From positions 1 to 64,000 of the forward strand of contig NIVC01003563.1 of NCBI GenBank assembly GCA_002269645.1: DNA of 64,000 bases, in the 5' to 3' direction. Source of the stretch: Macrostomum lignano (lineage: Eukaryota). The notes beneath the pieces were generated by a model. It worked only from the letters and a program-made list of their open reading frames with translations, did no database searches and was not told where the DNA came from. Positions 9,605 through 49,325 of this stretch are shown piece after piece. Positions within the stretch are counted from its first letter, which is position 1, and each line of letters opens with the position of its first letter. Both the position numbers and the translations under genes were made by a program.

Positions 9605-10087
9605 CGGGTGTGGTAGCTACACTCAACATGTCTCTTCCCTGCTGCAATACCCTCATTGTCTACTCTGCGATCGCTATTGGTGCCGGCCGTCTACAGATTT
9701 TGGTCCAGTTTTAGACCGGCGTAAATTAGCGTCTGATCTTTTTCGACCATTTGCGTCCCATCCAGCTGGGGACCTGTTACATGTATGAATATAATGTCTG
9801 CAGCATCATCAAGGCTTCAGCATCAGCAGCGCACAACTTTATCCATGGATAGTTCGCCATCAAGAAAAGAAAGAAAAAAGAAATAGTCTCTTTCTCACTC
9901 TCTCTCTTAATCTGTACTTCTGTCTGTGCTATTATGCTAATTTGCTTCGAAGTTTTTGGCTCTGAAAATTCCCATCTAGTTTGAACGTACTGTAACGTGG
10001 ATTTAATTATTTTAAGAAGCAGTGTATTGTGTATTTATTTTTATGTATTTTTAGTTGCATTAAATTTTGCTATTTCGGTATGTATAT

Positions 10088-12874: not shown

Positions 12875-14122
12875 TATTGTCATTAATGCAAGAGATTTCC
12901 GGGCATCAATGTCGAAAATTCCGGGCTCTGTGTTATTACATAGAATGCAGTTGAAATGTCTATGGCCATTATTTCTTTTGATTTGCGAGCTCTGGGCCAT
13001 AGACGAAGTTTTGATGGTCCAGGTCTAGAGATGGACAGTAAAACTGAAGGAGCTAGAAAAATGCTAAATGTATATTTTTTCAAATCTGTCAGGACTAAGC
13101 TGTGCTTGAGTTCTGAAAATGATCTACCATTTAGTTAATTATTCCAATCTGCTGGGAGAAATGGTTTCCGGTATGTCGACCGAAGAGCTGGCGTGGGTAT
13201 CATCCGAGTCGAACAGCCGGTATTTGGAGGAACTGAGCGAAGAATTTGCGTGCAAGATAGAATCAGAAGAGATTCTCGACATTCCGGAGGACGTGATGCA
13301 AGAGTTGAATCAGCTTGAACGAGATGGAATACCGGACTCCTCCGCCCGGCAGATGTGATGCAAGAGTTGAATCAGCTTGAACGAGATGGAATACCGGACT
13401 CCTCCGCCCGGCAGATGTGATGCAAGAGTTGAATCAGCTTGAACGAGATGGAATACCGGACTCCTCCGCCCGGCAGATGTGATGCAAGAGTTGAATCAGC
13501 TCGAACGAGATGGAATACCGGACTCCTCCGCCCGGCAGATGTGATGCAAGAGTTAAATCAGCTTGAACGAGATGGAATACCGGACTCCTCCGCCCGGCAG
13601 ATGTGATGCAAGAGTTAAATCAGCTTGAACGAGATGGAATACCGGACTCCTCCGCCTGGCAGATGGAGGACAATATGAGCCACTTCAAGACTTTTCTGGA
13701 AGAAATGCAACGGATCTGCTGCGAATTCCAAAGTCGATTCTGGCTAATTATTAGCGTTTCTTCTATTCGACACTGCGAACAAAGAACGAGCGTCCTTGCT
13801 CGAGATCGTCTTGCTGAAGGACAAGTTGAGCAGGCTGCGCCAGCTCCATCGGTCAGTGTGAATTTCTCTGGAACATTTCAAAATTGTACGTTCGATTTCC
13901 ACGGCCTGAAAGACTAATTTAATTTAACTAACTGATCGTCTCTCTTTGCATGCGTATAAGCGCATAAACTTTGCTGTTATTTGTTGGCCTCTGTTTCACA
14001 CTGTTGTTCTATTTCGCTCTATTACTGAAATAGAAAATACCATAGACAATTCAAGGCACGAATTGCCACATTGACGCCCAGAAAAGGGACGCTTAAGCCC
14101 GCAAAAATTAATGACAATATTA
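12872..14122 (+). mobile_element. Internally deleted Crypton-like (tyrosine recombinase, DUF3504/ZMYM-type) element
   Basis: N-terminus from ATG 13161 (...ELNQLERDGIPDSSARQMEDNMSHFKTFLEE). Frameshifted core-binding motif IPKSILANY*RFFYSTLRTKN at 13725-13788. It is joined directly to the typical tail VNFSGTFQNCTFDF* (stop at 13917). No catalytic R-H-R-H-Y region remains. Imperfect inverted ends: ATTGTCATTAAT/ATTAATGACAAT and GGGCATCAATGT/ACATTGACGCCC. Confidence 0.7.
13294..13665. repeat. 62-bp tandem repeat, 6 copies, inside the Crypton ORF
   Basis: Unit TGATGCAAGAGTTGAATCAGC...CCGCCCGGCAGATG starts at 13294, 13356, 13418, 13480, 13542 and 13604. Confidence 0.96.
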
Positions 14123-16462: not shown

Positions 16463-17784
16463 CGTCAGTCAACTGGCCGGACTGACTTCGGACTCTGGGC
16501 GTGGGATCGCGTCAGGAGACTTGATCAGCCCGTCCCTATGGCACAAATCAGACCCAGCCAGTCCCGCAAGTGAGAAAGAAACGCAACTCACTCTTGTCTT
16601 CACACAACGGCGATGGCGGCGGCAGGGGCTGGTTCCCTCGAATTCTGGCAGTGAGAGCTTCTAAGAGTGACTTTCAGTTGTAGCGGTTGCGGAGTTAGTA
16701 CGAGCGTAGCTGAGTCTAGGACATCGAAAAGGTGGCCCCCTACCGCCGCTCATGGATACATATACACTCAGCAACATGCTAAAGTTTCCACCCTGAAACC
16801 ACTGGTCAACAATTATGGCAGCTTTAATCCAACTCCTAGGCCTCCTTCTCACTTACTCACTTCCTCCTTACCAGCCTAAGCTGGGGTCTTTGTGACGCAA
16901 ATTACATCATCCACAGTTGAGATGAGAACCGCAGGCGTGGTGTGAGTTGCGCCACCTGGAGCCGAGATCTGAGGACAGTTTACCTCTGGTTTCGGGGTGG
17001 AAACTTTAACTATGTTGCTGAGTGTATGCTAAGCAGTGCAGATTCAACCCGACACAACACATGCGAACTATATAGATCTAACCTTCATTCTTGTATATTT
17101 ACATTTGTCTGCTTATTGTCTATTGTCCAGCGAGATAACCAATCCACATCCACCATGTAACGATTCAACAGCAGAGCTTAAATCTCATTTTACCCAGCTT
17201 CACACAGCATGAACCTGTAATAGCAGAATAAAATATCTTTCGTTAGGTTTCAAAATCCGTAAGGTTTGCAACTGAAAACAACAAACAGAAACAGGATATA
17301 AACTTGCACTAAATGAGGCAGACTGGCTTAATTTATTAAATTTAGAAACGCGTGTTTTGTTACTTAAAACTGTGTAGCAGCATCCTGTGAGAGTGCGGTA
17401 TTTTTTTGCAAAAAGACACTTTCACAACAATAGAGCAAGTGCACCAATCCAAAACTCGTAGTATAAAACCTACTAATTGCGAAAACAGAATCTGAGAGGA
17501 GTTCTTATCTTTCTGTCTGATGTACATGTAGTATTGTAGTCTATTTTGGTATTAGAGGAATGGAACTGTGAACCCTGGTGTACTTAAAACGGCATTACTG
17601 TCCATTCCGCCAACCCCCCCCCCCACACACACGCATACATGTACGTACGCATTCATACGCGCAGGCACGCGCTCACATAGGAGTGTACAGCGGCCCTATC
17701 CTTATTTATCGTTGGGTTGGCCCTCAAAAGCGTTTATTGCCCACTCAGACCCAAGCCGAGATTCCAATTTAGCCCCAAATTGAT

Positions 17785-17840
17785 GTGCCACTCGCCTGGA
17801 ATCGAGCCTGAACCACGGCCACTAGACTATAAACCCCTTC
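17785..17840 (-). mobile_element. tRNA-derived SINE-like head (not a functional tRNA)
   Basis: A-box TAGTCTAGTGG and B-box-like GGCTCGATTCC are only ~10 nt apart, so the anticodon arm is missing. Confidence 0.4.
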
Positions 17841-18011
17841 CGATGCAGTCTGGGGATTTATCAATCAAAGGTAAAGAGTGATTAACGCCGCTGCTGTAGC
17901 GGTGAAGACTCGATTCCACATCCGGGAAAGAAGTGGTAGCAATGAATGAGTTCCAGATCGATATCTGTCTGTTTGATGGCTGTGCAAGACAGCAGAATGG
18001 GTCACTGGTTT

Positions 18012-18375
18012 ATGGCTAATCTTGCTGTTGCGCTCGTTATTTTATTCTGTAGGAACGATTATTAACAGACGCAGTGCTCAACTGGTGGAACCTTTGACTT
18101 TGACTTTGACTTTGAAATGTACACCAGAGTTTTATGGACGGTACTCGCGAGACCGCCTTTGCAAACGCTGATCCTTGCAGCAATCACAGCATGCCGGAAA
18201 TCACAGACTCCAAGGCCTCTTCCGCACCTCTCAACGCATCTGATGTTTTCATCAACTGGTGGTTGCTTCAAATTCTACAAGATTTTGACCGGATGGTACT
18301 CACTGAGGTCTCCAGTTGGAGACTTCCTAACCTGCGGCAGAGCCTACCCTAATATCCTCACGAACATCGTTTAGA
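18012..18375 (+). pseudogene. 5' fragment pseudogene of the EGF-D8C family
   Basis: Degenerate MANLAVALVILF signal, QTQCSTGGTFD, then a (GACTTT)n expansion and frameshift. GGATGGTACTCACTGAGGTCTCCAGTTGGAGACTTCCTAACC matches both intact paralogs; there is a 27-nt deletion, and similarity ends at about 18375. Confidence 0.85.
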
Positions 18376-19246
18376 AAGTCAACCCGAACAGACAGCTGTA
18401 TATTCCGAAATTTTCCAGAATCAGTCAGTTAGGACTGGAGATTATCTGCTTTAATCGCTTGAAAAGACAGATTTCAAATCAAATATATTTTAGCCGCAAT
18501 TTACCGATTAAAGGAGAAACGGTTTTTCTATTTAAGACAGAGTTTTCCACAGAAATTTTAGTAAAAGCAAACTACTGTAAAGCAAAAATTTCTCTAAGCA
18601 CAGCTGCTTACATTGCAGAATTTGAAATATTTTTGTTGCTTGTGCACAACTGCTTAGGATTGTAAAAGTAAACGGAATTGGTGTTTCTGCTGTAAAGAGA
18701 AATATTCGGGCAGAAAAACTTTGATAGGTAAGCATAATAAAATAAGCTAATATTAAATTTCAAACAACATCACGGAAATAAGGTACTCTAGCTCAGCTCT
18801 AAAAACTAAAACTGTACCTATTACCTACAAATGATTTTCTTGTTTACACCCAGTGCCTGGATAAATAAAAAACAACTATCCTTTTGCGTTCTAGGCATGA
18901 GCAAATTATAAAACTGAATTACTATTAGCTCAAAGTAATAGGATCAGCAGTTGGGTACAAAAAACCAAGAATTTTGTACTTTAGTAATATGTACCTACTA
19001 TCTGATGCATAGAAATTTCCACAACAAAAAATCTAGCCTTTATAAATACAATTCATACATGAAATCGTTACGTCATATAATCACACTCATTCACTCCTGG
19101 TTAGCATTTCTTTCAGCTTTACAATTTAGTCCAGGTGCTGAAAGTCTACAAAATATTTGTTAACAAGCGTCACAGTTCCGTAAAAATAATCAAATCTTTA
19201 AGAAAAGCTCCTTAAAAACCCGTGAAACTCCAGTTTCTAATGCTAG

Positions 19247-21877
19247 TCATGTACGCAGACAAAGGCGAAGCAAAATAGCACTGCCGAGAACAATGGACAA
19301 ATTCTCGTAGGGCTTCAAAACCAACCCTGGCGTGCTTGACAAAGTGATCGTCAAGAAACGTGACGACATAGTAGTCGTAGTCGTCCTCATATTCAACGCA
19401 GACCCGTCGGCCGTCAACTTTAGGGACATAAATGTCACCAATCTTCCAGCGGTGTAGACACCGCTTCTCAAAGCGGTTGAGTTGAAACTGGCGCTCACCT
19501 CAATTTGAGTTCCATTCACTGACAACGCCGCTGCTTGATTTGAAACTAACAACCTTAACTCTAAACAGATGACCGGGTGTCGATTCGTTGCATTCAATGT
19601 GACGGATAGAGCATCAATGCCAGACTTCGATTGGCCAAACTGAGCTGCTTTAATCTCCACTTTCAGAGCTTCGTTTGGCACAGCCGCGGTCTGTCGTGCT
19701 GAAACTCCCAGCGTGACCTCGCCAATGATCGGAACCTTGGAAATGTTGATGCAAAGTTGGATCGGATTCGACGTTGTGAGCACCAACGAGGAGGGCTCTA
19801 CTAACTGAAAGAGAAGTCGGTGAGAAGCAGAAACCAGCTCCTGGGAAATGTAGTCTTCCGCTGATGAGTTGCACTTTGCCTGAAGGGTGCACTCCAGTGT
19901 TGCACCGTAGAAGTTCGAATGCGGCATTAGCATCTTTTCGTACGGGCAGGACGCGATGACTCGATTTCCTGGAGCCACAGATAAATCATCAACTGTGCAG
20001 CCTGAAATGACGACCTGCGTTGAGTTGTGAAATGTGATTCGGTATTTCACCCTATAAAGGAGTCCTAGCGTAGAGTTTGTACTAAACGCGTCACGAATGG
20101 CACAGTTAAATCGATCAAAATGCGGCTCGGATGAAGCACTCTTTGCTTGGCTAAGCACTGGCAACACGTCGGCTCCGGACTTCACCCTTGGCAAGCACGC
20201 GGATGCGTTGACGCAGGGCTCGTAGCCCGAGCCGTCAGCTGACACGAGACCGCCGCTGCACGCCTTCCTGTTTCCGATGCAGAAGTGGTGACTGCTCGAC
20301 ATGGTGGGTTCCAAATAGTAAAGATTAAACAATCCGCAGTAGAGCATTCGGACAGGATATGAAGTCTCTGCCGAGTTGTAGCAGACGGGTCCTGGCTGAC
20401 TGACTCTGAAGAGTTTGGCGGAAAAAAGCTGTCTGTTCGCATTGGCTTCCTGGACGATGTCGGTGAGGATATAAGGGTCGGCGCTGCCGCAGCTGACGGT
20501 TGTGTTGGGACACATGCTGGTTAGGAAGCCTCCAGCTGGAGACCTCAGTCGGTACCATCCAGTCGCCATGTTGTAAAAGTTGATGCAACCACCAGTTGAT
20601 GAACACGACTGGGTGTTGCCAGGTGCATGAGAGGCCGTGGAGTCAGTAATTTCGGGTATGCTGGCATTGCTGCACGGATCAGAGCTTGAAAAAGCGGTCT
20701 CGCAGGTCCGTCCATAGAACTCTGGTGTACAAATGCACCGGTAGCTGACGTAGTCAAAGGTTCCACCATTGGAGCAGTGCGTCTGTGACTCCACTTCACA
20801 GCAGCTCAGCAGCAGAGACAATACCACCGCCCACCTGCGATATAAGATTTAAAGTAGTGTTAGATTGATTGAAAAGGAGCCCTGCTCTTTGAATCGAAGT
20901 AAGAATGTATGCATGCATGCATTATAGGCGAGGTTAGTCATAAATATACCTGTGTGTGCTGCAGCTCATTTTGCAGTAGTGTTATTCGGTAGTGCTTGAC
21001 GATAACCAAAGATATGTTGCGCTATTGGTGTGTTCTAATTTCAGATCCTAACCTCCGAAAGCGTTACATTACGTTAAAAAAATCTCACCTGAGCATAGCT
21101 GAAACATGTCGGCTCATCTTGTTCAATAGTGAAGTGTCACTAGTCTATTTAATAAAACTTTATTCTGCGCGTTGAAGCTTAGAATTTTGGCCTCCGTCCT
21201 GACGGTAAACTATCGGGAATATGAACTTATTGCTGGAGCTCAATCCACTTTATACATGTAAGAGAGTATTGCACTACCGTATCAAATTCATATATTCATC
21301 CTTTACCGTTCTGAACCGTTACTAAATTTAGCAGCCATTGTAATTATTCTGTCTGCTCTATATGAGTATCAGTGTGCCTCTGCCGTCTGTCTTTCTCCGC
21401 CTCTGCTCATATTCTATCGGCTGCCTCAAAAAACTCCATTCAATTTTGCAGTCTAACCGATGATATATTGCGTTTTCTATGCTAATTTACTCGTAGTAGG
21501 TTCCCTTATAACAGATTGAGCCTCAATATGGCAGAGGGTTGTGACTAACAATAGGCTGTGGACCTTATGAGGGGCCGATTAACTATGTGAGCAGAAGAAA
21601 GAATGAGCAGAGGTGGAGAGAGTCTTCTCACATTTTAAACAGGAAGCTTATTTTTTTGTAGACAAACATTTATGGCAAAGATCTTAGGTTATCCAGAAAT
21701 TCCGATTGGATAAGCAGCAGTTCGCTAGTTCATCGGAAAAGAAGATTGAGTGCCACACGATATTCTCTTAGACAGGTTGTATATACTTTGCGAAAATTTT
21801 AAGAAGTTCGAAATCTATAAAAAGTATATTTGGGGAAATAATTCACGCATTATTCTTTGAGATACTTACCGGAGCAT
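19247..21877 (-). CDS. Secreted/GPI-type EGF + D8C (uromodulin/VWDE-like) protein, 531 aa; exons 21877-21870 and 20834-19247
   Basis: Exon 1 ATGCTCCG|GTAAGT spliced in phase 2 to ttatatcgcAG|GTGG gives MLRWAVVLSLLLSCC (signal peptide). EGF domain CSNGG...CICTPEFYGRTCE; D8C-like GWYRL...CP...CG...CGLFNLYYLEP...FC; hydrophobic C-terminus with no cytoplasmic tail. Confidence 0.82.
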
Positions 21878-22627
21878 TAGTCCACCAAAAACCACCACTG
21901 TTTAACTGGGTTGATTGAAATAAAACAAATTTAAACAAAATTCTAAGAAATCTAAGAAGCACCGAGTTCATGCAAGTTAAAGAAAGCAGAGCATTGCGGG
22001 GCCTTGCTTGGTTCTTTATATAGAGAGTATAGTCTACTATAGTGTCGGAGTCTGTATAGAGGATGTCTGTTATTTATTCATGTTGCTAAATTTAGCAACG
22101 GTATTTAGTATAGTGCGTGAGCAGAGGCAACTCTGGCTCGTACTAACGGGATGCAAGGTTGTCGTGACGTACCGCTGTCTGTAAATAGCCTAACGGATGG
22201 TTTTAGTTTTTTGTCTGGCATTAAACATAACATCCGTAATGATTTACGAGTATTTAATCAAAAGCTAGTTTACCTGTTTAGTTTGGTGGGCATTCTAATA
22301 AGAAAGTTGTTTTGCTTGTCTCGTCTTATGATTTTTAGGAGCGATTTCAGAACCAGAAGCATCTGAGAACAAAAACTTAAACCTTGACGCACACAAAGAC
22401 TTGCAGAAACGTCACTGTCACAAAAAACCCTTAATTTCAGAAAAATAAGCGTTGCTTTTTCTTGCTTACTTAAATCGGGAAATTTAAATGCTTTAGCTCT
22501 AAGTTATAACCAATCCGGCTATTGGACTGGATCTCTGATTTTAATTCGGACTCAACTATCATTGAATTGTGTCTCCAACGCCGCCATCATAATATGTGAT
22601 AGAAATCAAGTTTACACTGAGACTGTT

Positions 22628-23186
22628 GGATAGAGGGAGCTGTAGGGACTGTGGGATAGATGGGCTGTAGGGACTATGGGATAGAGAGGCTGTAGGGACT
22701 GTGGGATAGAGAGGCTGTAGGGACTGTGGGATAGAGGGAGCTATAGGGACTGTGGGATAGAGAGAGCTGTAGGGACTGTGGGATAGAGGGAGCTATAGGG
22801 ACTGTGGGATAGAGAGAGCTGTAGGGACTGTGGGATAGAGGGAGCTGTAGGGACTGTGGGATAGAGGGAGCTGTAGGGACTGTGGGATAGAGGGAGCTGT
22901 AGGGACTGTGGGATAGAGGGAGCTGTAGGGACTGTGGGATAGAGGGAGCTGTAGGGACTGTGGGATAGAGGGAGCTGTAGGGACTGTGGGATAGAGGGAG
23001 CTGTAGGGACTGTGGGATAGAGGGGGCTGTAGGGACTGTGGGATAGAGGGGGCTGTAGGGACTGTGGGATAGAGGGAGCTGTAGGGACTGTGGGATAGAG
23101 GGAGCTGTAGGGACTGTGGGATAGAGGGAGCTGTAGGGACTGTGGGATAGATGGGCTGTAGGGATTGTGGGATAGAGGGAGCTGTA
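22628..23186. repeat. 26-bp minisatellite (TAGAGGGAGCTGTAGGGACTGTGGGA)n, ~21.5 copies
   Basis: Direct reading. Confidence 0.95.
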
Positions 23187-23612
23187 CTGCAAGTGTCCCT
23201 CATGTACTGCAAGTGTCCCTCATGTACTGCAAGTGTCCCTCATGTACTGCAAGTGTCCCTCATGTACTGCAAGTGTCCCTCATGTACTGCAAGTGTCCCT
23301 CATGTACTGCAAGTGTCCCTCATGTACTGCAAGTGTCCCTCATGTACTGCAAGTGTCCCTCATGTACTGCAAGTGTCCCTCATGTACTGCAAGTGTCCCT
23401 CATGTACTGCAAGTGTCCCTCATGTACTGCAAGTGTCCCTCATGTACTGCAAGTGTCCCTCATGTACTGCAAGTGTCCCTCATGTACTGCAAGTGTCCCT
23501 CATGTACTGCAAGTGTCCCTCATGTACTGCAAGTGTCCCTCATGTACTGCAAGTGTCCCTCATGTACTGCAAGTGTCCCTCATGTACTGCAAGTGTCCCT
23601 CATGTACTGCAA
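23183..23612. repeat. 20-bp minisatellite (TGTACTGCAAGTGTCCCTCA)n, ~21.5 invariant copies
   Basis: Direct reading; abuts the 26-bp array through a shared TGTA. Confidence 0.97.
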
Positions 23613-24443
23613 TCGGCCAAATATTTCCACTCTTGAAGTCACTCATCTGAATTAAGTGCAATTAAATAGCTAAAGAGTTTGGATTCTCGATGCCGAAACA
23701 GGTTGGAATCTTTTTCAATTAAAGTCTAAAGATGGACTGCTAACAAGGAGATGCAATAAGGATTCAATTTTTCAATAAGGATTTACAGTATAGCAGAGAT
23801 CCGTGAATCCAGACAGTAAAAACTCGTCTCCTCTGCGTTGCTTTTGCTACCAAGTAGAGCAAAGAAAAAAAATTATTGGCACAATACCCTACTAGTTTAC
23901 GTTGCTTTCAGACAATTAATGCCGGGACAGAACGAGACGAATGCAAAAAATAATTGCATCCTGTTTCTCTTTTATTATTTTTTATTATCATTATTACTAT
24001 TTCTACTCAACATCAATGAGTCTGTGCTCAATAGGGTTAAAGGGGCTTTCATCTGTCTGAAGCGAAAGCGCCGCTCTCAGTCTGAGAACTGTTTTTAAGA
24101 TATCAACCTGGCGGATACGGCAGCATCAGGGATGCCATCGCAGACCACAATAGTGCCAACAAATATAATTAGTTACTAATATAATAAGAAACTAAATCCT
24201 TGAGAAGATTAATAATCTTCTCATCCTGCATGCTGAGACAATTTGCGAAAGCATAAAAGCGAGTCCGTCCAAGCCCGTTTCAAGCGACGCTGGCAGCCAA
24301 GTAGCGACCCAAAAGACTGTTCAACTTCTATTGGAATCCATTCGAACTCCAAGTCGTCAGGCAATAAGCGGCACCACAGTAAGAATTCAATGGCTATATT
24401 TGTTGCTTTTTTTCTGCCTGTCCTAGTGTCTTAGTATCTTAGT

Positions 24444-26383
<1,940 letters not shown>

Positions 26384-26453
26384 AGCTTCCTGAGTAAATT
26401 TCGAATGTCTATAAAACGGCAAATGCGTTATTTTCTTTTGTGCAGGCACCAAG

Positions 26454-29400
26454 ATGGTTCAGCCAAGCAGTCTGTGCACCTTGCTAAGGTAAGTACAAGC
26501 AAAAGGCTTGCGTGCTTTTTGAGTATCTGAATGATTTTTAGCAGTTAACATGTTTTATGTATCAAGAAACCAAATGTAACAGGTAGGTTTCGTTTTCTTT
26601 TTATCTTTTGCTCACGTGACAAAAAAGACTTTCAAAACACCCTGGCCTCTAAAGGCCCTATTATGAGAATGAGACTTAAAAAACTCAGTACAGAATATTA
26701 TTATTCAAGGCAGTGTATTGTATAGCAGCAAGAACGCATAGTCACAATGCAAAGTACTCGTAATTAATTAATCAAAGTAATAAAAGTAACAAACAAAGAG
26801 CTGGTCATTCGATAGCTGTTGTCGAGGTGGGTAGAGATCATTGTTTTCCCCGCTCCGATGTAAGCGCTTTTGTAGTGCTTAAAGCAATGTCTTCTTTGTG
26901 ACAATCACATAGAAATGTACAGACCTTCTTTGATTGTGCCAATAGAACTGCAGCAACAATCATTTATGTATTTAGGTCCATCTGAGACAACTAATGTACA
27001 TCAAAATTATTTTCTCTGAATTCCGGCAAAACTTTTACAACATCTTGCAATGCAATGAATAATTTTAGATCACTACTGGCTCTGTTGCTAGTGAGTAGTA
27101 TCAAGACACAGACGCAGTGCTCAAATCATGGAAACTATGATGCAGTGAAGGACAGATGCACCTGCCAACCGGATTATTACGGCAGGAACTGTGAAACCGC
27201 TTTTTCAACCTCTAATCCGTGCTTGGATCCCAGCATTGCAACGATCGACGACTCAAAGGGCTCTCATGCTCCCAGAAACGTCAAGTCGTGCTCGGACTCT
27301 GGTTATAGTTGCTTTGACTTCAGCTCAATATCTTTTGGATGGTACCGACTGAAGTCTCCAGCTGGAGGCTTCCTAACCAGCACGTGTCCCGACACAACGG
27401 CCAGCTGCGGCAGCGCCTACCCTTATATCCTCACCGACATCGTCCAGGAAGCCACTACAAGCAGAACGCTGTATTCTGGCAAACTTTTCAGAGTCAGTCG
27501 GTCAGGACCCGTTTGCTACGACTCGGCAGAGGCTCCATATCCTGTCCGAATCCTTACTTGCGGATCATTTAATCTTTACTATTTGGAACCTACCCAGTCC
27601 AGAAACGATCACTACTGCATCGGAAACAAGAAGGCGTGCAGCGGCGGTCTCGTGTCAGCTGACGGCTCTGGCTACGAGCCCTGCGTCAACGCATCCGCGT
27701 GCTTGCCGAAAGCGAAGTCCGGAGCAACAAATCTGCCAGTTTTGCAGCAAGTTCACAATCCTGATAACCAAAAATCCAAGTTTAACTGTTCCTTTGGAGA
27801 AAGTTTTGAGACAAACTTCACACAAGGGCTTCTATATAAGGTTTACTACAGACTAAGGTTTCACAACAAAACGCAATTGAAAATCCCAGCGTGCACTTTT
27901 CAAAACCTTACGGTATCCTCAGGAGGCAAAATCACGGTAACCTGCGATGACGAAGATATTCTTATTCCTCATTCAAACATCTACGGCGGTACACTGGAAT
28001 GCGTGCTGCAGGCCAAGTGCAACTCAGAGCTGTCTGAATATGTATCCGAGGAGCTAGTTTCTATGCCGCACCAGTTTGAGTTTCAGTACAGCTTTCTTGA
28101 TTCATCGACAAATGCAACCACTTCAGTACTTACTCCATCTAGTTCGATTAAACTTTGCATAAATATTACAAAAGTGCCCAACTTTGATTATATTACTGTT
28201 AGAGTTGCTGTCCGACGCCAGGCGCTGATTTCTAACGATAAAATAAAGGTAAAAATACAGAACTTACAATTTAACGGCTACAATAATCCTTGCGAAGCAA
28301 ATATAACGACCAGAAATACTCGCCATTCAAATGTCTGCCTAGACTTAAAACTGCTTAACGATGATGAAGAAGGTCTGATTGTCAGAGGCCTCGATGGATC
28401 ACAGCTGGCGCCTATGATTCAGGTGAACGTCAGCTACCGTGCTAATAAAGATCCTCGAGGTGTGTATACCGGAAATAATTGGGTAAAATTGCAGTCACGA
28501 AAACTAACGATAGACATTTCCTCTCTCTACAACACCACAGAGGTAAAAGACTTTTTTCATGTGTACAGCGACCCCATTTTCAAGCCGGCAAATTCAGACA
28601 GTCCTAGATACGCCGACTTTTTTTATGGGGACTCTTGCCGGAGTTTGTCGCTAATGAGGCACAAAATTTTGCCTTACGAGGTGCAGGCTAAAGAGTGCGA
28701 TTCAACAAAGAGAAAATTCCATTCCGTTGTTACTGAGGTTGCTATCAGGTACGAGTCCTACCGAATCCTGATATACAGCGAGAAGGAAGCATTCCAAGTT
28801 AAGACAACAAAAATTAAAGAATTCAGCGCTCTGCCGCTTACGAATGGCTTTCCTTGGGGTGTTTCTTTCGAGGAAGGAAAAAATGGAGTGAGGATCAAAT
28901 TTGAATTGTATGGTACTATCATATACGTATGGAATTTTTTGATTCATGGTTTTAATGACGATGGTTGCCGTCACGACTTTATTATGAGCCGCAAATCAAT
29001 GCTAGAAAATAGTTGTTCAGGGAACGTCGGGAACCTCGAAACGAACGGCAAGAATGCCTTGGATTTAATGATAGTTCCAGGTTTCTACGATACCGAGAGT
29101 CGAGTCGATGGTCTTATGTATAGAAAATCTTTGGCATCGTGGATACCGACCGACACCATTGCCTCGGACAGTCCCAGAAATTTGTTCTCTGACAATTTTG
29201 TTCCAGAGGACACTCTTGAGACCATTGAGTCATTGGACTTTTGCTCTTGCGAAAAAGGCAAAGAAGATGACGACTTGCCCGAAAATCTGTCAAATCAATG
29301 TGTCGTCAGACAGCTAGGTGATCCATCACGAACAAGGCGATCTCTCGACAACAATCTGCAACCACGACGAGCTACTAATAGGCTAGAAACACTGCTAGCT

Positions 29401-29952
29401 AAACGCAGCAAACGCTCCACAGAAAATGTCACTGCTGAGATGGCAGCTGAGCAGTGCGCCAAGTACTTACAGTCTGTACTAGCAACAAAAGGTACCATAG
29501 TGACAGAGTGCTCCACTGCAAAAGGCATTCTCGGCGGTTTGGACTTTATGACGCAGTTCAAAACTGTTTGCGTCCAGTACGCCACCCAATTGGACACATT
29601 CGATTTTACTGAAACCCTGTTCAACTCGTTCGCTGGTCAGTGCATTACAAGCCTCAGCTACAACGTGTCAGCTGTAAAGACAAAGGCCAGCACCATTGAC
29701 AGGATGCTGACCGAGGCGTGTCCGAATAAGTGCAATGGCAACGGCGACTGCGTCTTTGGAGCGTGTTTGTGCAATCGCGGCTACTCCGGCGCCACGTGTG
29801 AGATCGGCCCCGTCAAACCTGCTACAAATCCTGCTCCGGATCGGGATGCAACTCCAACTACGAGTACAAAAGCTACTACAGTAAAGACAGAAACAACCAA
29901 GCTTCCATTTATTTGCATCAGTCTGCTCGTGCTGGGTTTCCTGATCGGCTAA
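26454..29952 (+). CDS. VWDE: VWDE-like protein (EGF, D8C, degenerate vWD, C-terminal EGF, probable GPI signal), 972 aa; exons 26454-26488 and 27069-29952
   Basis: Exon 1 ATG...CTAAG|GTAAGT spliced in phase 2 to ttttAG|ATCA gives MVQPSSLCTLLRSLLALLLV. The EGF and D8C domains align with the minus-strand paralog. vWD-like DFFYGD...PYEVQAKEC; furin-type RTRR and KRSKR sites; CPNKCNGNGDCVFGACLCNRGYSGATC EGF; Thr-rich stalk and terminal hydrophobic stretch. The symbol is family-level only. Confidence 0.82.
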
Positions 29953-31471
29953 CTTCAAACCGTGCGCCTTATAGAATAGAAATATTTCTTTATATTAAAG
30001 ATTGTTAAAACTTTTATTCAGGTTTCACAGGATCAGATTTTTTCCTAGCTAACATATTAACCAGAATGATTTTTTGTGTGTCTAAGACAATTTTTTCGAA
30101 TCGTAAACCCAAGCGCTATAGCTATGGATTTAAAGAAACTATATATTCAGAAGAGTATTTTTTACACTTGATCGTCCATTATTTTAGATGGCTTTGTCTT
30201 ACATAAAGTCGTATTTTAGCCTACTTGTATTTGGTAGATATTTTTGTCAAGAAATTACAGTAATTTTTGTTAATTTTAAGCTGACTATCTCTCTGTATCT
30301 CTTAAATCCCTCTGTACAGCTTTCACAAGCAGCTGTGAGGAGTAACTGCCATCCTGCAGTAGCTAGCGCTTAGCGAATATTTATCAACTGTCGATACTCT
30401 TGATGCAACCCATTGAAAGACACAATCAACTAGAATACATCCAATCCCTATAAGACTTGATCTGCAGTAAATTTCAAGAACATTGTGCCGCACATACCCG
30501 GGGTTCAACCACATTGATTTTTATTTTGTTGTCGTACGAGTCGTATTTACGAGCTTACTTCAGTAGTTTTTTCATTAAATTGATTATAAAAGCTAGATTG
30601 CATGGAATCCATCAGAACTTCGATGCTTACTGTTTGTGCTTTTGAATATCCTGTCCGGGGCTCTCAGCGGCTGACTGGTCTGCTTGCTGATTTGAAATTC
30701 GAAAGATTTTTTATTGATTTTCAAACACTACGCTATGCGGTTACTCCAGCTATTCATTTATTTCTAAAGTACGATTATTTATCCTTAACCTGTTTTGTTT
30801 ATTCAAGAATTTTTATCAAACGCTTCAGTTGCTCTCAAAATTCTGTTTTAATTTATTTTTTTTACTCAGAATAATACACGCAAAGCAGTTTAAAATAGAA
30901 TGAGCCGGCTCTCAAGCATGCACATGAGAACTAATATTTGCGTATTTTCTTATCGCTTCTGAAAAAGAGATTTCACTAAATGTCAAAAAGCTGTCGCCTA
31001 AGAGTCAATTTAGAGCGTTTTATTACCTGCGACTATGAAACGACTCTGTAGGGTCTGAAGTTGCGTCTAAAGCACATCTGCGTCACTTTATGAATTAGAA
31101 TCGCATTTCGCATTTACAAGAATCAAACGAACCATCGGAGCACGAAAGAAGGCAGACGCGAACACTGAAATGGGAGAGAGCGAAGTGCATAAGAAAGCAG
31201 AAAGCCTAAAGAGCAAAAGAAGCAAAAAGGGGGAGAAAAGGGAATTGCACAAAGGTTGCGGAAAAAACGTTAAGCAGAACTAAAATTCTGGCTTATGCGC
31301 TACAACTGGAGCACTGAATGCAACCGGCAGCCGGACATCAACAGGATGGACCGCTGCGCCAGTCACCGAACTGGATCAACTGGGTAGGGTGGCGCCGCTC
31401 CTGAGGATGACAGTCGCTCCGTCGAGCCGCAACAGGTGCCCCGAAAGAGAGCGTGGATCGATCGAGTCCGG

Positions 31472-33552: not shown

Positions 33553-36470
33553 GTCAGTCAGTCAGCAGACAACGTCACAAAGGCGCGTTTCAAGGCCTGG
33601 TCGCGAACGTAGGCTGCACCACCGTCAGCGTCTGAGGCGCCGGCATCAGTCAACAGGCAGTCGACGAAACGCCGAGTGCGCGCCTGCCCCCGCCAGTAGG
33701 GTGCCTGTAGCGTCAGCAGCAGCACCTCGTGCACCGGCTGTGGGCAGTACGACTCGGCTCGAATGAAATGGCCTGCCAGCTGGAGTCGCCGACGGCGCAA
33801 TAGTTCGCTAGGACGGGACTGTAGAGTGTTCTACCTCCCGTTAAAAAGGTAAAAATAAGATAATCGTATAATGCTACTATAAGTAAGTAAGTACACGCAT
33901 GTGCGCCTAAGCTTTGAATGAATCACGCTACCAAGAAAAGATGTTACCAAAATAATACGCCATGAGCCATTTTCCCCTTTTAGCGCAACACGTGAATTGT
34001 CATAATGCTATTTTGGATCAAAAAGTTGCCTATAAATACAAGCGGTCCGAAGCGGACCAGGAGCCAACTCCCGACGAGAGGAGAAGCTCCGAAAAGGAAG
34101 CCTCAGGAGGACTTCCTGAACAACCAAGTCAATCGAGACTCGGTCGAATTGTTGCGGTAAGCCTTCCTTATTTGCGCCCGTTGTGTTAGAGACGTCTCGC
34201 TCAAGTCTATTGAGACTTGAGTTTATTTGAGTCTGTTGAGACTCTTGAGTCTGTTTAGACTCCATTGGTTGCAGTCTCCAGAAGGACTGCCCCTGATAGA
34301 TCTTAGGAGACTATCAGTGGTTTCCGGAGCCATACCTAGAGTGCATAGAGGCACTTCTAGAAGGAGGCTTAATTCAGACCGCAGTTTGGCGCAGGGATCC
34401 CATTGTTAATTCGGAAGCTTCCCATTGGTCCGAGCGACAGAATCCGGCCGGAACTATTTGAAGAAGAAACGAAGACTCGGACTCGATCTACAAACGAAAG
34501 TCAGAAGTGACTATACGAGAGCAACTGAAACTAATCGAGAGCTACTCCGAGAGATCTCCAAAGGACTCAAGGTAATTGAATACCTTCTGTTGACTTACTG
34601 GGTTGCCTAGCTACTGAACTAGAAGTGATTGTTCCTTGATTATCGAAAGTCGGGTAATAAGGAACACATCAGGACAAGCCGGTGCGGCGATAGAGTGCTA
34701 CAATGGCGACTCGCTCGTAGCGGATCTTGAAAGCGGCGCGCAGCAGGCCAGCGTGCGCCGCATCGACCAGCTGTTCGAGCGCATCCGTCAGCGTCCAGGT
34801 CTCGGCGTTGTACAACAGGACGGTCTCGATCACCGCCGAAAACTTTGGCAGTCGGGCAGGGCCTCGGACTGCAGGACAAGCCTCGCGGAACGGAAGGCAG
34901 CCCAGTCAAGTGCACGGCGGGCGTCGCAGGTCCTCGCAAACGTCATGCAGGCACCAGACCGCCGAGGTAGACGAACTGCTCATAGCACGAAAGCTTCGTC
35001 ACCTCGCTTCGTCAAAATTGCAGCCTCAATGTCATCCGGCACGCAGAGCTCGACGGTCTTCTGCATGTTGAAAACCAGGCCGACACTCGCCGCGACGCTC
35101 ACCAGCCGGTCCAACTGGCGTTGGGCGCCCTCGATGGTCGAGGACAGCAGAGCGAGATCATCGGCGTAGCCCAGTACGCTGAGCCGCCTTTCCGGTTGGA
35201 GTCGACCCACGCGTCGCTGCAACAGGAAGCCGTCATCGTTAGAAGGGCCGGAGCAGTCCGCAGCACCCAGTCAAGTACCAGGACGAACAGGAACAGCGCA
35301 AGCGTATCTCCCTGAAGCACCCCAGAGGATGTCTCAAAGAAAGCAGCGTTCGTGCCGTGATACAGCGCCATGACGGCGGAGATCAGCTGCTCTGGCATAT
35401 TGTACGAACGGAGCACCTTTGGGAGCACAGACCTGACGACCGAGTCGAATGCCTTCTTGAAATCTATGAAGATAACAATCGGGATCGACTGGCGTATCCA
35501 TGCTTCCTCAATGACTCGCCGAAGAGCCAGGATCTGCGTCACTGTGCCGCGATGGGGCCGGAAGCCGTTCTGCTCAGGACGCAGGTACGGATCCAACACG
35601 GGCTGTAACCGCGATAACAGCATCCGGTTGAACAACTTCGCAGCGCAGGACTGAAGGCAGATACCTCGATGCTCCTCTCAAGCCTCGTGGTGCCCGGCTT
35701 CTTAGGAACTGCGACGATGTACGCCGTGGTCCATTCGTTGGGTGCCTCCTCACCGAAAAGCACGCAGTTCATCACACTGGCGACCTCGCTGGCCACACAG
35801 TGGATGCGCAGCGCCTCGATGGGCACCTCGTCCGAACCCCGCGCTTTCCCGCCCGGTGACTGTTAATGGGGCGAGCTTCACAACGTCGGCTGTGCTGACT
35901 GGGGCTACATTACTCTCCTCTACCGGCTACGGCGTCTCCGGTGGCAGCCCCAGATCGTTTCAGCAGCCTCAGAGCGAAGCCGGACGTCGACCCGAAGCAG
36001 CCGGTCAGACAGGGAGATATGCAGCGATAGCTCTGCTGCAGCCTCGGTCCGATCAGCGCTCCAACTCCTCCACGGCTTCGTTGGTCCGCCGACGTGTACC
36101 GAGGGTCCAGCCGGTGACTAGGTCCTCACAGTGATTTCCCGATTCGGCCCTGATGGACACCTCTTGCAGCGAGATGACATTGCATTTGAGGTTGAGCGCT
36201 ATGCTGCGCTGCAGCAGCAGCCCTCTCCACCCAGGCGGCCTTGAGAGTGCGGCAGAGTTCAGCGTCCTGACCCGAGAAGCGGGCCCTGTGGTACGGCTGG
36301 GTCTCGATGACAGAAGCCTCACGGTCCCCCGGCGCCACCCAGAAGATCCGATTGGCCAAGGATCAGCAGCAGCTCGACGGGCGAAAACCAGTACGTACGT
36401 ACGTACGTTGCCGACCTCACCAGTTTCGCTTGCTCACGCCGACGTTCAACTCGCCGGCGCTCGCTTCGCT
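33553..36470 (-). mobile_element. Degenerate RTE-clade non-LTR retrotransposon (APE + RT), split by a solo LTR
   Basis: APE start RVRTL...NVISLQEV (~36130-36270). RT motifs LRPEQNGFRPHRGT, FIDFKKAFDSV, GVLQGDTLA and LGYADDLALL. C-terminal RRRRLQLAGH; (CTGA)n tail. Frameshifts and deletions present; the 5' boundary is approximate. Confidence 0.9.
33820..34671 (+). mobile_element. Solo LTR (copy B), 852 bp
   Basis: TGTAGAGTGTTC...GAACACATCA; 4-bp TSD GGAC at 33816-33819 and 34672-34675; TATAAATACA at 34031. Removing it restores the RTE reading frame LYRRTGLSRPSELLRRRRLQ. Confidence 0.92.
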
Positions 36471-41829: not shown

Positions 41830-42824
41830 AATCTGATCAGACACTCTCCAATCTCATTAGAGACTCCTTAATTTCATCAGAGACTCTCCAATCTCATTGT
41901 AGACTACTAAATCTCATCAGAGACTTCTCAATCTTATCCGAGACTCCAATCTCATCAAAGACTCTCCAATCTCATTGTAGACTACCAAATCTCATCAGGC
42001 TCCCCAATCTCACCAGAGACTACCCAATCTCATCAGATACTCTCCAATCCCATCAGAGACTCTCCAATATCATCAAATACTCTCCAATCTCATCAGAGAC
42101 TCCCCAATATCATCAAATACTCTCCAATCTCATCAGAGACTCCCCAATATCATCAGATACTCTCCAATCTCATCAGACTCTCCAATCCCATCAGCCCAAC
42201 CTCATCAGATACTCTCCAATCTCATCAGATACTCCCCAATCTCATCAGATACTCCCCAATCTCATCAGATACTCTCCAATCCCATCAGCCCAACCTCATC
42301 AGATACTCTCCAATCTCATCAGATACTCCCCAATCTCATCAGATACTCTCCAATCCCATCAGCCCAACCTCATCAGATACTCCCCAATCTCATCAGAGAC
42401 TCTCCAATCCCATCAGAGACTCTCCAATCTCATCAGATACTCCCCAATCTCATCAGAGACTCTCCAATCCCATCAGAGACTCTCCAATATCATCAGATAC
42501 TCCCCAATCTCATCAGAGACTCTCCAATCCCATCAGAGACTCTCCAATATCATCAGATACTCCCCAATCTCATCAGAGACTTCCCAATATCATCAGAGAC
42601 TCTCCAATCTCATCAGAGACTCCCCAATCTCATCAGATACTCCCCAATCTCATCAGATACTCTCCAATCTAATCAGAGACTCCCCAATCTTATCAAATAC
42701 TCTCCAATCTCATCAGAGACTCTCCAATCTCATCAGAGACTCCCCAATCTCATCAGATACTCCCCAATCTCATCAGATACTCTCCAATCTAATCAGAGAC
42801 TCCCCAATCTTATCAAATACTCTC
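41830..42824. repeat. 19-20-bp minisatellite (CTCATCAGAGACTCTCCAAT)n
   Basis: Direct reading, ~50 variant copies. Confidence 0.95.
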
Positions 42825-43084
42825 TTAGTAATCATGTCTCTAAAATAACCAGAAACATGCAAATATAATCAGAGACGCCTAAATTAACCAGGGACACCAA
42901 ACGCATAGACAAGTCTCTTAAAAAACGTCTTAAATTTGTTATCAATCTGATTTAAATATGATTTATTACAATACTATGAGTATTTGTTTTTAATATTCTT
43001 CCGATTGCTAATACATTTAAATGAATTGTGTAAAACTAAATCGTATGCATGATCAGCCCTCTGACCAGTTGCTTGTCCTGCCAG

Positions 43085-44470
43085 ATGTCCGAACAGAAGC
43101 GCGGCAGCTCGGCTCGCAGTTTAAAAGTGCACGCCGAGGAAGACTTCATAGCCGATCTTGAGGCCATTGTCGAACGGGATTTCTATCCCGATTTGCCTAA
43201 GCTACGCGCCCAGCAACGCTATTTGGATGCTCGGGCCAGCGCCGGTAGCGCCAGCGTTGCCATGGCTACGCCGCTGCAGACTCCGGTTCCATCGGCTGCC
43301 GGAGAGAGCATCAGCTCAGCCTCGCAGCATCAACAGCAGCACCAGCAGCTGCCGCCCTCAGTCGGCCTGGACTCCTACCTCACCGGCAACACCTCCGAGG
43401 ACAACGCCTCGTTCCAGGCCCTGCTAGATGAATCTGAGCGCCGCAGGCGAGTGAAATACGCTTGGTTCTACCAGCAGGCCGATGCTTTGAAGGCAATCAA
43501 ATCTGCTGACGAGGCCGAATCAACTGCCGCGTCTTCAACGTCGTCCACCATCGCCGCTGCTGTGACGTCAACAGCGGCGGCGTCGTCTGCGTCAAGCTCG
43601 GAGGCCGTCACGGCCGGCCTGGACTCGTGGACTGGCTACCGGGTGCGCAGCGCCCTCATGTACTCTCCTGACGATGCCGACGCTGACGATGGCCGGGCGC
43701 TGGCCGCCCTGCCGGAGACCCGGCGCCAGATTGTGCACGCCAATACGCGCTTTCGACAGGCGCCATTTTCGCGCCCAACTGGAGAGGCGCCAACAGCATC
43801 ATCTGGCGCCGCTTTTACTGTCGGCGCTTCCAACCCTTCGACAGGTTTTGACGGCGTCTTTCGTCGTCCCGGCGTCCCTGGCCGAATTGGGCCGGACGGC
43901 CGCGAGCTGAGCACCGGCGCCGCGCCCGGCCGGACAGCGGCTGCCTCGGCCGCCTATCTGGCCACGCCGTCGCCGGCGCCCGGAGTCGGCGAGTCGCCGC
44001 TGATGACTTGGGGCGACATCGACGGGACGCCTTGTCGGCTAGACGACGCCGCTTGCCTGCACGGCGCCAGCCCGGCAGCAGGGGCTTCGGGCTCGGCCAC
44101 GCCGTCCGGCGGAGGCCTGCCGTACTTCCGCATCCCGGCCATGCCGACTGTGCAGCTGGCCGACCGGCTCGGCCGTCAGCGCCGGCTCGCCAGGCAGCGC
44201 GACGCGGCCGTCAACGACGCCAACGCCGCGAAAGCGAAGGCAGCGGCCGCTGGTGGCAAGTCGCCTTCGCCAGCCTCGATGGGACTCAGCCCGGCTGCCA
44301 AGCGCCTGCTAAAGCGATCGGCTGCCCCGGCGTCCAGCTTCGGTGACAAGGCCCTGCGCGCCTCCTACCGGCCGTCGCCTTCGCCGTCTCGCCGACCGGG
44401 CTCAACATCGGCGCCGGCGTCCACCCGGTCCAACGCCTCGCTGACTGACGGCCTGCTGTCCGACGCTTAG
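43085..44470 (+). CDS. ESS2: Splicing factor ESS-2 homolog (DGCR14), coding region intronless
   Basis: EEDFIADLEAIVERDFYPDLPKL, LDSYL...TSEDNASF, PGVGESPLMTWGDIDGTP and SPAAKRLL motifs are characteristic of ESS2/DGCR14. The ATG at 43085 directly follows the acceptor tgtcctgccAG. Confidence 0.92.
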   Translation: MSEQKRGSSARSLKVHAEEDFIADLEAIVERDFYPDLPKLRAQQRYLDARASAGSASVAMATPLQTPVPSAAGESISSASQHQQQHQQLPPSVGLDSYLTGNTSEDNASFQALLDESERRRRVKYAWFYQQADALKAIKSADEAESTAASSTSSTIAAAVTSTAAASSASSSEAVTAGLDSWTGYRVRSALMYSPDDADADDGRALAALPETRRQIVHANTRFRQAPFSRPTGEAPTASSGAAFTVGASNPSTGFDGVFRRPGVPGRIGPDGRELSTGAAPGRTAAASAAYLATPSPAPGVGESPLMTWGDIDGTPCRLDDAACLHGASPAAGASGSATPSGGGLPYFRIPAMPTVQLADRLGRQRRLARQRDAAVNDANAAKAKAAAAGGKSPSPASMGLSPAAKRLLKRSAAPASSFGDKALRASYRPSPSPSRRPGSTSAPASTRSNASLTDGLLSDA

Positions 44471-44852
44471 TCCGACAATTGCTGTGCCGGCCACCTGCTG
44501 CTGGCATATGTTAATAGAGCGAGTTTGTAGGGGATTTTCCACCGTGTACTTAGACTGGCTACTAATAGTAGTATTGCGATGTATTAGTACTTTTATTATT
44601 CAGTAAATACGTTAAATTGATTATGTATTTTGTCTCAATAGTCGTCTTTCTTATATGTACAAGTGTAGCCAATCACTATGGTTTCAAAGCCTTAGGCTGC
44701 GTCCCTAGCGTGGGAGGGTTGAACTTCTAAAAAGCTAGAATGCTCCTGCTTAAATCTTCTAGAGGACGTACCCAATTCATTTTGTCCTTGGTTGTTATGG
44801 TCATTTCCTGGCACCCTCGCAGGGCAAATGGAGATTTTTGACAACCAACTAG

Positions 44853-45335
44853 TCTCCTGACAACTCAACAGACTCCTGACACCTCAACAGACTCCTGACA
44901 CCTCAGCAAGACTCCTGACACTTCAACAGACTCCTGACACCTCAACAAGACTCCTGACACTTCAACAGACTCCTGACACCTCAACAAGACTCCTGACACC
45001 TCAACAGACTCCTGACACCTCAACAGACTCCTGACACCTCAACAAGACTCCTGACACTTCAACAGACTCCTGACACCTCAACAAGACTCCTGACACTTCA
45101 ACAGACTCCTGACACATCAACAAGACTCCTGACACCTCAACAGACTCCTGACACCTCAACAAGACTCCTGACACTTCAACAGACTCCTGACACCTCAACA
45201 AGACTCCTGACACCTCAACAAGACTCTTAACGCCTTAACAAGACTCTTAACGCCTCAACAAGATTCCTGATACCTCAACAAGCTTTCTGACACCTTAACG
45301 AGACTCATAAAACCGCAGTAAAAGTCCTGACACCT
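44853..45335. repeat. 19/20-bp minisatellite (CTCAAC[A]AGACTCCTGACAC)n
   Basis: Direct reading. Confidence 0.93.
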
Positions 45336-46013
45336 CAGTGGAGGACTCCGACTTTTATACCTCATCAAGACTGCTGAAACCTTACCAAGACCCTGACTGA
45401 CACCGACCGAGACACCCCTGGCCATAAACCTAAAGGGACACCTTATTGTTTATAATCCCAGACTGGATTGTAATGAGTGCAGCATCTTGTAACTAGCAGA
45501 TAAACAAGATATTTACATGTCAAAGCCCTTTGTCTTCGTTCAAATTATCAAACCATAACTTCATTTATGGTTTTATGCTACTCGTAACAGTTGAAAACAT
45601 TGCGTTACTTTAATTTTTGCACATTTTTAATAAGAGAACATTTTCATTTTGCGTTGAAATTGTAGCGCTGGCGGAGGGCGCCGCTCGGCGGTACGTAAGG
45701 CCTGACCCGACCCGGCCTGGCTCAAAAGTTTTGCCGGACCTGGTAGATGAGCAGAACAAAAAACAAACATAAAATTATAATTGTCTTTTGAAAGTCTGAT
45801 GTCGGATCTCTGGCTGATGGCTCCGGCTGAGTTCGCTGAGCAGGGGGAGACTCTGGCGGTCACTGGCGGCCTGACTGACGGTGCCCTGACCTGATGGGAG
45901 AATTAGGGAGAGAAAGAGAGGAGTGGGATCCGCATGGCCGACACGCGTGAGTCCTTGCTCTTCTGCTGCTGGAGATGTACTTCATAGTACCTACTTTTTG
46001 CTAGCGTTTAGTA

Positions 46014-49135: not shown

Positions 49136-49195
49136 TCACTCTAATTCAATTTTATCGCATTGTACCAATTGAAAGAAACCAGCTGTGGCTGCTAT

Positions 49196-49252
49196 CTGAC
49201 TAACCCCCAGTTCCCCCCCCCCTCCCGCCTTCTCTTAAATGATCACTTCCAG
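49196..49252 (+). promoter_or_regulatory. Branch point, polypyrimidine tract and 3' acceptor upstream of the SR gene
   Basis: CTGACTAAC, then a C/T tract, then ttccAG at 49251-49252, 73 nt before the ATG. Confidence 0.6.
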
Positions 49253-49325
49253 CTAGCATCGGCCTCGGCTCTTCACTGACAGCACTGCTCTGTACTCTTG
49301 AGACTCGCCAATCAGCACCAGCGAC

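Follow-up and report, generated by a model that had tools for sequence, protein, structure and literature searches.

A probable gene conversion tract between two head-to-head VWDE-like genes of Macrostomum lignano

We analyzed a 64,000-nucleotide stretch of the Macrostomum lignano genome (assembly GCA_002269645.1, contig NIVC01003563.1, positions 1 to 64,000, here called the window), which contains two long open reading frames (ORFs) facing away from each other, gene A on the minus strand and gene B on the plus strand, an arrangement of head-to-head paralogs. Our analysis makes it very probable that A and B are VWDE-like genes and that a stretch of near-identity shared by them stems from interlocus gene conversion. 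The encoded proteins are 52-54% identical across the first ~488 residues of A, with B running ~470 residues further, and outside the shared tract the two genes are ~60-65% identical. The main elements are the following:

19247-20834, minus strand: main exon of gene A, the short form (531-535 aa; ORF and translation), with its stop codon at 19247-19249
27069-29952, plus strand: main exon of gene B, the long form (965-972 aa; ORF)
20172-20561, minus strand: gene A arm of the proposed conversion tract, reaching from the GWYR motif in the D10C-like domain across the Cys linker
27336-27725, plus strand: gene B arm of the tract and its probable acceptor, with near-identical cores at 27335-27450 and 27615-27715
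18020-18460, plus strand: pseudogene fragment C, the remnant of a degraded copy of the 5' portion of an A-type gene, in tail-to-tail orientation to A (39% to A by tblastn)

An island of low synonymous divergence within saturated paralogs

A repeat search returned one inverted pair, 20172-20561 and 27336-27725, 390 nt long and 88% identical. A 38-mer singled out in an earlier note on this DNA occurs at exactly two sites, 20229-20266 (minus strand) and 27631-27668 (plus strand), with zero occurrences expected by chance. Within the pair, two core blocks are 94% identical (109/116 and 95/101 positions), and the segment separating them is 79% identical (130/164). When the codons were aligned, the tract (A residues ~99-232) had a proportion of synonymous differences (pS) of 0.20, a synonymous divergence (dS) of 0.235 and a nonsynonymous divergence (dN) of 0.129. 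The N-terminal side, including the EGF domain, had a pS of 0.61 and a dS of 1.26, and the C-terminal side, with a pS of 0.71 and a dS of 2.25, was saturated. Synonymous divergence is thus not uniform along the alignment, and the near-identity of the two blocks at synonymous as well as nonsynonymous sites, which the earlier note had reported, is borne out.

Among codons specifying the same amino acid in both genes, 89/101 were identical in the tract compared to 77/155 outside (Fisher 1.2e-10). Applied to the same codons, a scan statistic singled out A residues 99-227 with a score reached in 0/1000 permutations, and the tract borders were abrupt. The cores differed from the segment between them both in all mismatches (Fisher 2.7e-5) and in synonymous differences (0.002), with a pS of 0.33 in that segment, still far below background. 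Of the regions previously described as far more diverged than the blocks, the EGF side and the downstream part are so; the loops between the blocks are not. Block 1, with a pS of 0.035, carries 5 nonsynonymous and 1 synonymous differences, an imbalance that is not significant. The pattern is that of a single tract of ~390 nt in which two cores are younger or better preserved, rather than of conserved blocks parted by loops at background level.

A third copy changes partner inside the tract

Pseudogene fragment C provided a third taxon for a test of conversion by three-taxon site patterns. Read in the frame of A, it contains three stops, indels of +1, +1, -2 and -4 nt and a 27-nt deletion within the tract region, and a (GACTTT)n hexamer microsatellite is inserted in its former EGF. 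The fragment is also present in a second genome copy of the locus (contig NIVC01001660.1, here L001) at ~13444-13817. Upstream of the tract most informative sites united A and C (55 sites, against 25 uniting A and B and 11 uniting B and C), and inside the tract most united A and B (24 sites, against 9 for A and C and 6 for B and C), a switch significant by Fisher's test (6.6e-5) and followed as a trend by third codon positions. The identity of A and C was unchanged, 78% outside and 80% inside the tract, so that A is not unusually slow there, and that of B and C rose from 58% outside to 78% in the tract, equal to the A-C level.

Judged from these site patterns, the switch of topology against C is the signature of interlocus gene conversion and, together with the drop in dS, it substantiates the gene conversion suggested earlier. 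The A lineage was probably the donor and B the acceptor, at a time after the split of A and C, as overwriting of B by A-lineage sequence at that stage would be expected to raise B-C identity to the A-C level. The G+C content at third codon positions (GC3) of gene B, 0.62 in the tract vs 0.41 downstream and thereby nearing the composition of A, would also fit GC-biased conversion.

The tract might instead have been kept constant by selection on synonymous sites, serving an RNA structure, a regulatory element or an antisense product, with no conversion at all. It is the most conserved segment of the protein, and between A and its counterpart on L001 (A') dS was 0.034 in the tract vs 0.078 elsewhere (3 vs 21.5 synonymous differences), a difference that did not reach significance. 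Constraint of this kind is nevertheless at odds with an A-C identity that is the same in and out of the tract and with a grouping that switches from A and C to A and B. Moreover, no Rfam family was found in 17500-30500, and the antisense ORFs were short and unconserved. We therefore regard this explanation as very improbable.

The tract recurs in a second genome copy

L001 belongs to the same assembly, GCA_002269645.1, which is a long-read assembly, and encodes PAA65359.1 (BOX15_Mlig006017g1, Macrostomum lignano), a protein nearly identical to A that was matched in a profile search. The contig is collinear with window positions ~31766 to 6732 at 95-98% identity. M. lignano is neopolyploid, having three subgenomes, and a k-mer model gave it a single-nucleotide polymorphism variation of 2.6% overall and an L1-L2 divergence of 1.39% (PMC10733133). 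Because of this neopolyploidy and low subgenome divergence, L001 is most simply seen as a homeologous or allelic copy of the locus. A and A' (L001 11043-12630) were 97.0% identical, with 47 differences in 1588 nt, a dS of 0.067 and a dN/dS of 0.28, the latter indicating that gene A is constrained and functional. B and its counterpart B' (L001 1815-4698) were 99.7% identical, with 9 differences in 2884 nt and a dS of 0.0046.

Both genome copies carry the tract, with the same boundaries and the same gene order, and B equals B' throughout it. This recurrence on NIVC01001660.1 speaks against assembly chimerism, which the earlier note had named as a possible source of the pattern. Neopolyploidy with three subgenomes, in a species whose assemblies are known to contain errors (PMC10733133), makes a chimeric or collapsed consensus of paralogs or subgenome copies conceivable; however, besides the agreement between the two contigs, A differs from A' at 9 sites of the tract, whose identity is 88% rather than 100%, so an artefact of assembly is in our view almost certainly not the cause.

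From the pS of block 1 (0.035), compared with an A/A' dS of 0.03-0.07, the conversions would predate the split of the two genome copies or be about as old, and the youngest parts of the tract would have about the age of the split between the two subgenome copies. At each of the 9 tract sites differing between A and A', B matches one of the alleles (4 times A, 5 times A'). We considered that these differences had been borrowed from B by ongoing conversion and set this aside, as a single older conversion followed by mutation would give this pattern. A micro-conversion at 28042-28170, where three B/B' differences have B' equal to A, was likewise not called, the sites being too few.

Divergence between the genome copies differs 15-fold for these adjacent genes, and five of the nine B/B' differences cluster at 28170-28224. 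The low divergence of B and B' may reflect homogenization between subgenome copies on the B side only.

A and B belong to a diverged VWDE-like family

The domains of the two proteins, as delimited in this work, are encoded at the following positions:

Gene A, minus strand, all within the main exon:
20776-20702: EGF, preceded by the rest of the signal peptide
20680-20279: D10C-like domain
20278-20195: Cys linker
20194-19391: beta-rich middle region
19390-19250: Thr-rich tail and C-terminal hydrophobic segment

Gene B, plus strand:
27118-27192: EGF
27214-27618: D10C-like domain
27619-27702: Cys linker
27703-28539: middle region
28540-29130: degenerate VWD-like domain
29329-29340 and 29404-29415: furin-type sites RTRR (residues 766-769) and RSKR (residues 791-794)
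29719-29802: teneurin-type EGF (Pfam EGF_Teneurin, 7e-10, residues 896-924)
29803-29901: Thr/Pro stalk
29902-29949: putative C-terminal hydrophobic anchor of 16 residues

A profile of A and B searched against 1.8 billion representatives added four members to the family, three of them from M. lignano and the fourth on a Logan contig. The next matches were lophotrochozoan and hemichordate proteins named VWDE-like (Owenia, Babylonia, Ptychodera; E 1e-10 to 1e-6), in which Pfam D8C_UMOD (PF23283) underlies the matched stretch and most of which also carry VWD, EGF_Teneurin or Ig_VWDE. The hhalign match between the Macrostomum family and the VWDE-like proteins (probability 99.9%, E 3e-32) spans 724 columns, reaching from the EGF/D10C region across the VWD-equivalent and the RxxR-site region. 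A hidden Markov model (HMM) built exclusively from non-Macrostomum D8C regions scored 83.7 bits for B (E 1.5e-23 at Z=20000), 79.2 for A and 66.6 for the paralog P0003. An AlphaFold2 (AF2) model of B residues 55-232 (numbered on the ORF starting at 27055), based on a 21-sequence alignment, reached a mean per-residue confidence (pLDDT) of 88 and a predicted template modelling score (pTM) of 0.80. An initial run with a 4-sequence alignment was discarded (pLDDT 41). When the model was submitted to Foldseek, ranks 1-11 were all decoy modules of GP2 or uromodulin (UMOD), with probability 1.0 and E values from 2e-7 to 3e-5. These were the only significant matches in the Protein Data Bank (PDB), 7p6r_A giving an E value of 2.1e-7 and TM 0.69 over 136 columns, and the first match outside GP2/UMOD had an E value of 0.16.

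The D10C-like domain of A and B keeps C1-C4, C8 and C10, of which C1, C4, C8 and C10 are invariant in the 21-sequence alignment, together with the motifs GWYR, C-P...CG, xxC-G and YYL-PT...YC. C9 and two of C5-C7 are missing, and an additional Cys sits between C1 and C2, which brings the total to eight. Set against the canonical D10C disulfides (C1-C8, C2-C9, C3-C6, C4-C10 and C5-C7; PMC8930769), this eight-Cys domain is, as predicted from its sequence, a variant disulfide pattern. In the profile alignment, the C-terminal half of B corresponds to the VWD-equivalent of VWDE-like proteins and the regions that come after it. In the VWD-equivalent of B, SDPIFKPAN and VDGLM occupy the positions of the canonical GDPH..TFDG and GLCG, and PF00094 did not match at E<=1; by profile-profile alignment this predicted domain is homologous to VWD but degenerate. 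Gene A stops ~30 residues into the equivalent domain, at its first strand, and continues with a Thr-rich stretch and a hydrophobic tail, in agreement with the short form lacking VWD proposed in the earlier note. The order D10C, VWD-equivalent and teneurin-type EGF on one chain is thus found in B, and A has the part up to the start of VWD. The EGF-D8C architecture postulated from the first inspection finds support in the HMM scores of ~80 bits, in the hhalign match and in the structural match to GP2/UMOD.

On these comparisons, A and B are members of a diverged, lineage-specific VWDE-like family, and VWDE-like is the better label than uromodulin-like; the paper defining the D10C fold lists VWDE among the proteins bearing it (PMC8930769). 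With VWDE-like proteins they share the order of modules, namely N-terminal D10C/D8C domain, Cys linker, middle region, VWD, RxxR site and teneurin-type EGF, at an identity of only 17-30%. They differ in having an extra N-terminal EGF, a C-terminal hydrophobic anchor and a short paralog without VWD, and B additionally in having a single C-terminal EGF instead of a long EGF array and a VWD without GDPH and GLCG. The predicted fold of B residues 55-232 is that of the decoy module of GP2 and uromodulin (beta-hairpin plus D10C); unlike these proteins, A and B have no ZP module detectable by Pfam scan, hence no filament, lack Cys9 and the Cys5/Cys7 pair, and have an extra Cys, and the D10C-like domain of B has no sequon. 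The planarian protein equinox is also a secreted flatworm EGF protein and has been compared with VWDE, but it has N-terminal TSP1 domains and EGF repeats and no VWD or D10C (PMC9117669), whereas TSP1 and EGF arrays are both absent from A and B. This architecture ruled out A and B as equinox homologs.

Several points weigh against reading A and B as VWDE-like paralogs joined by conversion. Direct Pfam scans (hmmscan, E<=1) of A, B and the five relatives P0002-P0006 found EGF models only, with no D8C_UMOD, VWD or ZP, and PDB sequence searches with 2-sequence and 7-sequence family profiles gave EGF matches only and did not reach GP2/UMOD. Genuine D8C proteins were part of the alignment behind the AF2 model and could have biased it to their fold. 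The test of direction is a 150-nt comparison with a decayed pseudogene, the sample consists of two full genes and one pseudogene fragment, each in two genome copies, and the comparison is confined to M. lignano, whose other paralogs are only ~35% identical. A literature search found no expression data for these M. lignano genes. Taken literally, the Pfam scans agree with the absence of a D8C profile match, which had been named in advance as evidence against the D8C assignment; the custom HMM, hhalign, AF2 and Foldseek results overturn that outcome. A precomputed database table contained a weak PF23283 match, for the A-type protein P0002 only. In a word-indexed homolog search, full-length B had no match and B without its EGF matched only P0002 and P0004. 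The B ORF had no exact match on record in public assemblies. Neither the locus tag nor D8C in flatworms turned up in the literature searched.

A model for the conversion

In the sequence of events that we favor, the short form A would have arisen by partial duplication, and a further partial copy, C, would have decayed. Non-allelic (interlocus) conversion between the inverted copies, whose tracts lie ~6.8 kb apart, would then have copied the ~390-nt tract over the D10C core and linker, most probably from the A lineage to B after the A/C split. It may have been confined to the sole segment with enough identity left to pair, namely the D10C core from GWYR to the domain end and the conserved CSGGLVSADGSGYEPCVNASAC linker. 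Each event would restore identity and favor the next one, a self-reinforcing dynamic that would account for two fresher cores of ~100 nt within an older tract of ~390 nt. The 94% cores may represent later, shorter conversions or, alternatively, patchy mismatch repair of a single heteroduplex, and the number of events is a matter of interpretation. Given the inverted orientation, exchange between the copies cannot delete the interval.

The tract resembles those described for interlocus conversion in Caenorhabditis, Drosophila and human duplicates in its length of a few hundred bases, sharp borders and linked copies, and also in the local drop of dS, raised GC3 and phylogenetic incongruence (PMC3966223, PMC3924832, bioRxiv 10.1101/135152). 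It differs in being an island of similarity inside synonymously saturated genes and in the inverted orientation of the copies, and is otherwise not unusual. We take the conversion to be genuine yet unremarkable, since the process and the family of proteins are both of kinds already known. The tract nonetheless offers a clean worked example, with a pseudogene as internal outgroup, of how an identity island can persist in saturated paralogs, and it makes the D10C region unsafe for dating these duplicates.

Possible functions

The A and B proteins have signal peptides, C-terminal hydrophobic tails and 11-13 N-glycosylation sequons each, and their products are probably secreted, heavily N-glycosylated and membrane- or GPI-anchored, in line with the surface location supposed in the earlier note. 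That note had further envisaged a defence or adhesion family with a homogenized scaffold and variable loops. In its full adaptive form, conversion under selection would keep the D8C scaffold, the loops would be under positive selection, and the proteins would present glycans and act towards microbes as decoys or receptors, the short form being a dedicated decoy. We consider this unlikely. The predicted fold is that of the FimH-decoy module of GP2 and UMOD (PMC8930769), and block 1 has the 5 to 1 ratio of nonsynonymous to synonymous differences given above. One of these differences toggles a sequon within the tract, N117-T-T in A (20506-20498) being D-T-T in B, and a second sequon of A, N63-A-S (20668-20660; in DPC-S-N-A-S), which B lacks, lies at Cys1+2, the spacing of Cys63 and the FimH-binding Asn65 in GP2. 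However, the 5:1 ratio is not significant, and the segment between the cores is more diverged synonymously too, so that age explains it better than selection; a homogenized scaffold with variable loops is thus left without significant support. The decoy function of UMOD and GP2 depends on a specific protected high-mannose glycan and on a filament formed by the ZP module (PMC8930769), and the Pfam scan of A and B found no such polymerization module. D10C domains are also found in VWDE and in OIT3, for neither of which a decoy role is known (PMC8930769). The two sequon details in A keep a weak version of the decoy proposal alive, as leads only.

By analogy, A could serve the flatworm as a decoy, at the surface or in mucus, for microbes bearing lectins, with recurrent conversion with the unglycosylated B keeping the scaffold in step, or the pair could act in the wound or blastema matrix as vwde does in axolotl; both are speculative proposals to which we attach little probability. 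Vertebrate vwde acts in the growth of the blastema and is required for it (PMC7390686). Because of this requirement, and because M. lignano is a regeneration model, A and B would be reasonable candidates for RNA interference. For annotation, our results offer a family name, VWDE-like and D10C-bearing, for M. lignano proteins labelled 'hypothetical' or 'EGF-like domain-containing', and point to a flatworm VWDE-like branch that the Pfam D8C and VWD models miss.

First exons, processing sites and public gene models

The main exon of gene A has no in-frame ATG before the stop that precedes it, so the gene needs an upstream exon, for which there are three candidates on the minus strand:

21870-21877: mini-exon of 8 nt, ATGCTCCG followed by the donor GTAAGT, encoding M-L-R with a phase-2 split Arg (annotated L001 model at 10001-10008 and exact match in the window)
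21096-21089: alternative first exon, ATGCTCAG followed by GTGAG, a look-alike of the mini-exon
20969-20950: alternative first exon with a weak donor (GTATAT), its ATG at 20969 being taken as the choice of the earlier note

With their common acceptor at 20834/20835, all of them yield an identical phase-2 split Arg. The main exon is 97% identical to that of the annotated PAA65359.1 (L001 11043-12630), whose model places the first exon at 21877-21870, not at ATG 20969. The two near-identical 8-nt candidates, 780 nt apart, could be alternative first exons or reflect a duplicated 5' end.

For gene B, a first exon is predicted on the plus strand:

26454-26488: MVQPSSLCTLL plus the AG of an Arg codon, with the donor GTAAGT

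This exon is exactly conserved in L001, and its donor is also used by a chimeric public model (P0001). An unspliced in-frame ATG at 27055 would provide an intron-free alternative start, also with a good signal peptide. A phase-2 intron inside an Arg codon of the signal peptide, previously ascribed to both genes, is thus supported for A by the model of PAA65359.1, and the corresponding exon of B is only predicted. The paralog P0003 has no intron in its signal peptide.

The RTRR and RSKR sites between the VWD-like domain and the C-terminal EGF of B suggest proteolytic release or two-chain maturation, as read from these motifs. A basic motif of RxxR/KR type is found at the aligned position in P0003-P0006, and the VWDE-like consensus has RRKRD.

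On the NCBI contig NIVC01001660.1, gene B (L001 1815-5313) was not called and A' is the sole gene listed in 22.6 kb. In another public set, gene B is fused, with exons skipped, into a 3625-aa chimera (P0001) with the URGCP-like GTPase genes that lie upstream and with antisense parts of gene A.

The intergenic spacer and neighboring genes

Most of the ~4.6-kb spacer between A and B is occupied by three satellite arrays (22621-26383):

22621-23186: 26-mer array, 22 copies
23183-23612: 20-mer array, 21.5 copies, 100% identical to one another
24445-26383: (TCTG) array, 485 copies, ~1.9 kb

These satellites abut or lie near one another, and the array lengths in the window differ from those on L001.

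Elsewhere in the window, a URGCP/very-large-inducible-GTPase-like gene lies at 800-5752 on the plus strand (Pfam URGCP_GTPase, 1e-111). It is split over three overlapping ORFs (800-1579, 1497-2336 and 2177-5752), which implies introns or frameshifts, and, judging from protein P0001, has at least two tandem copies in the genome. A reverse-transcriptase fragment was found at 35099-35635 (minus strand), and an intron-free ORF of 663 aa at 58837-60828 (plus strand), with no Pfam match at E<=0.001, may derive from a mobile element. The region 42000-52000 is rich in GC (51-53%) and has a strongly negative GC skew; DNA of 25-28% GC flanks it at 38-42 kb. Within this block lie a gene for an Es2-family nuclear protein (43049-44470) and an RRM/RS-rich, splicing-factor-like ORF (51024-51680).

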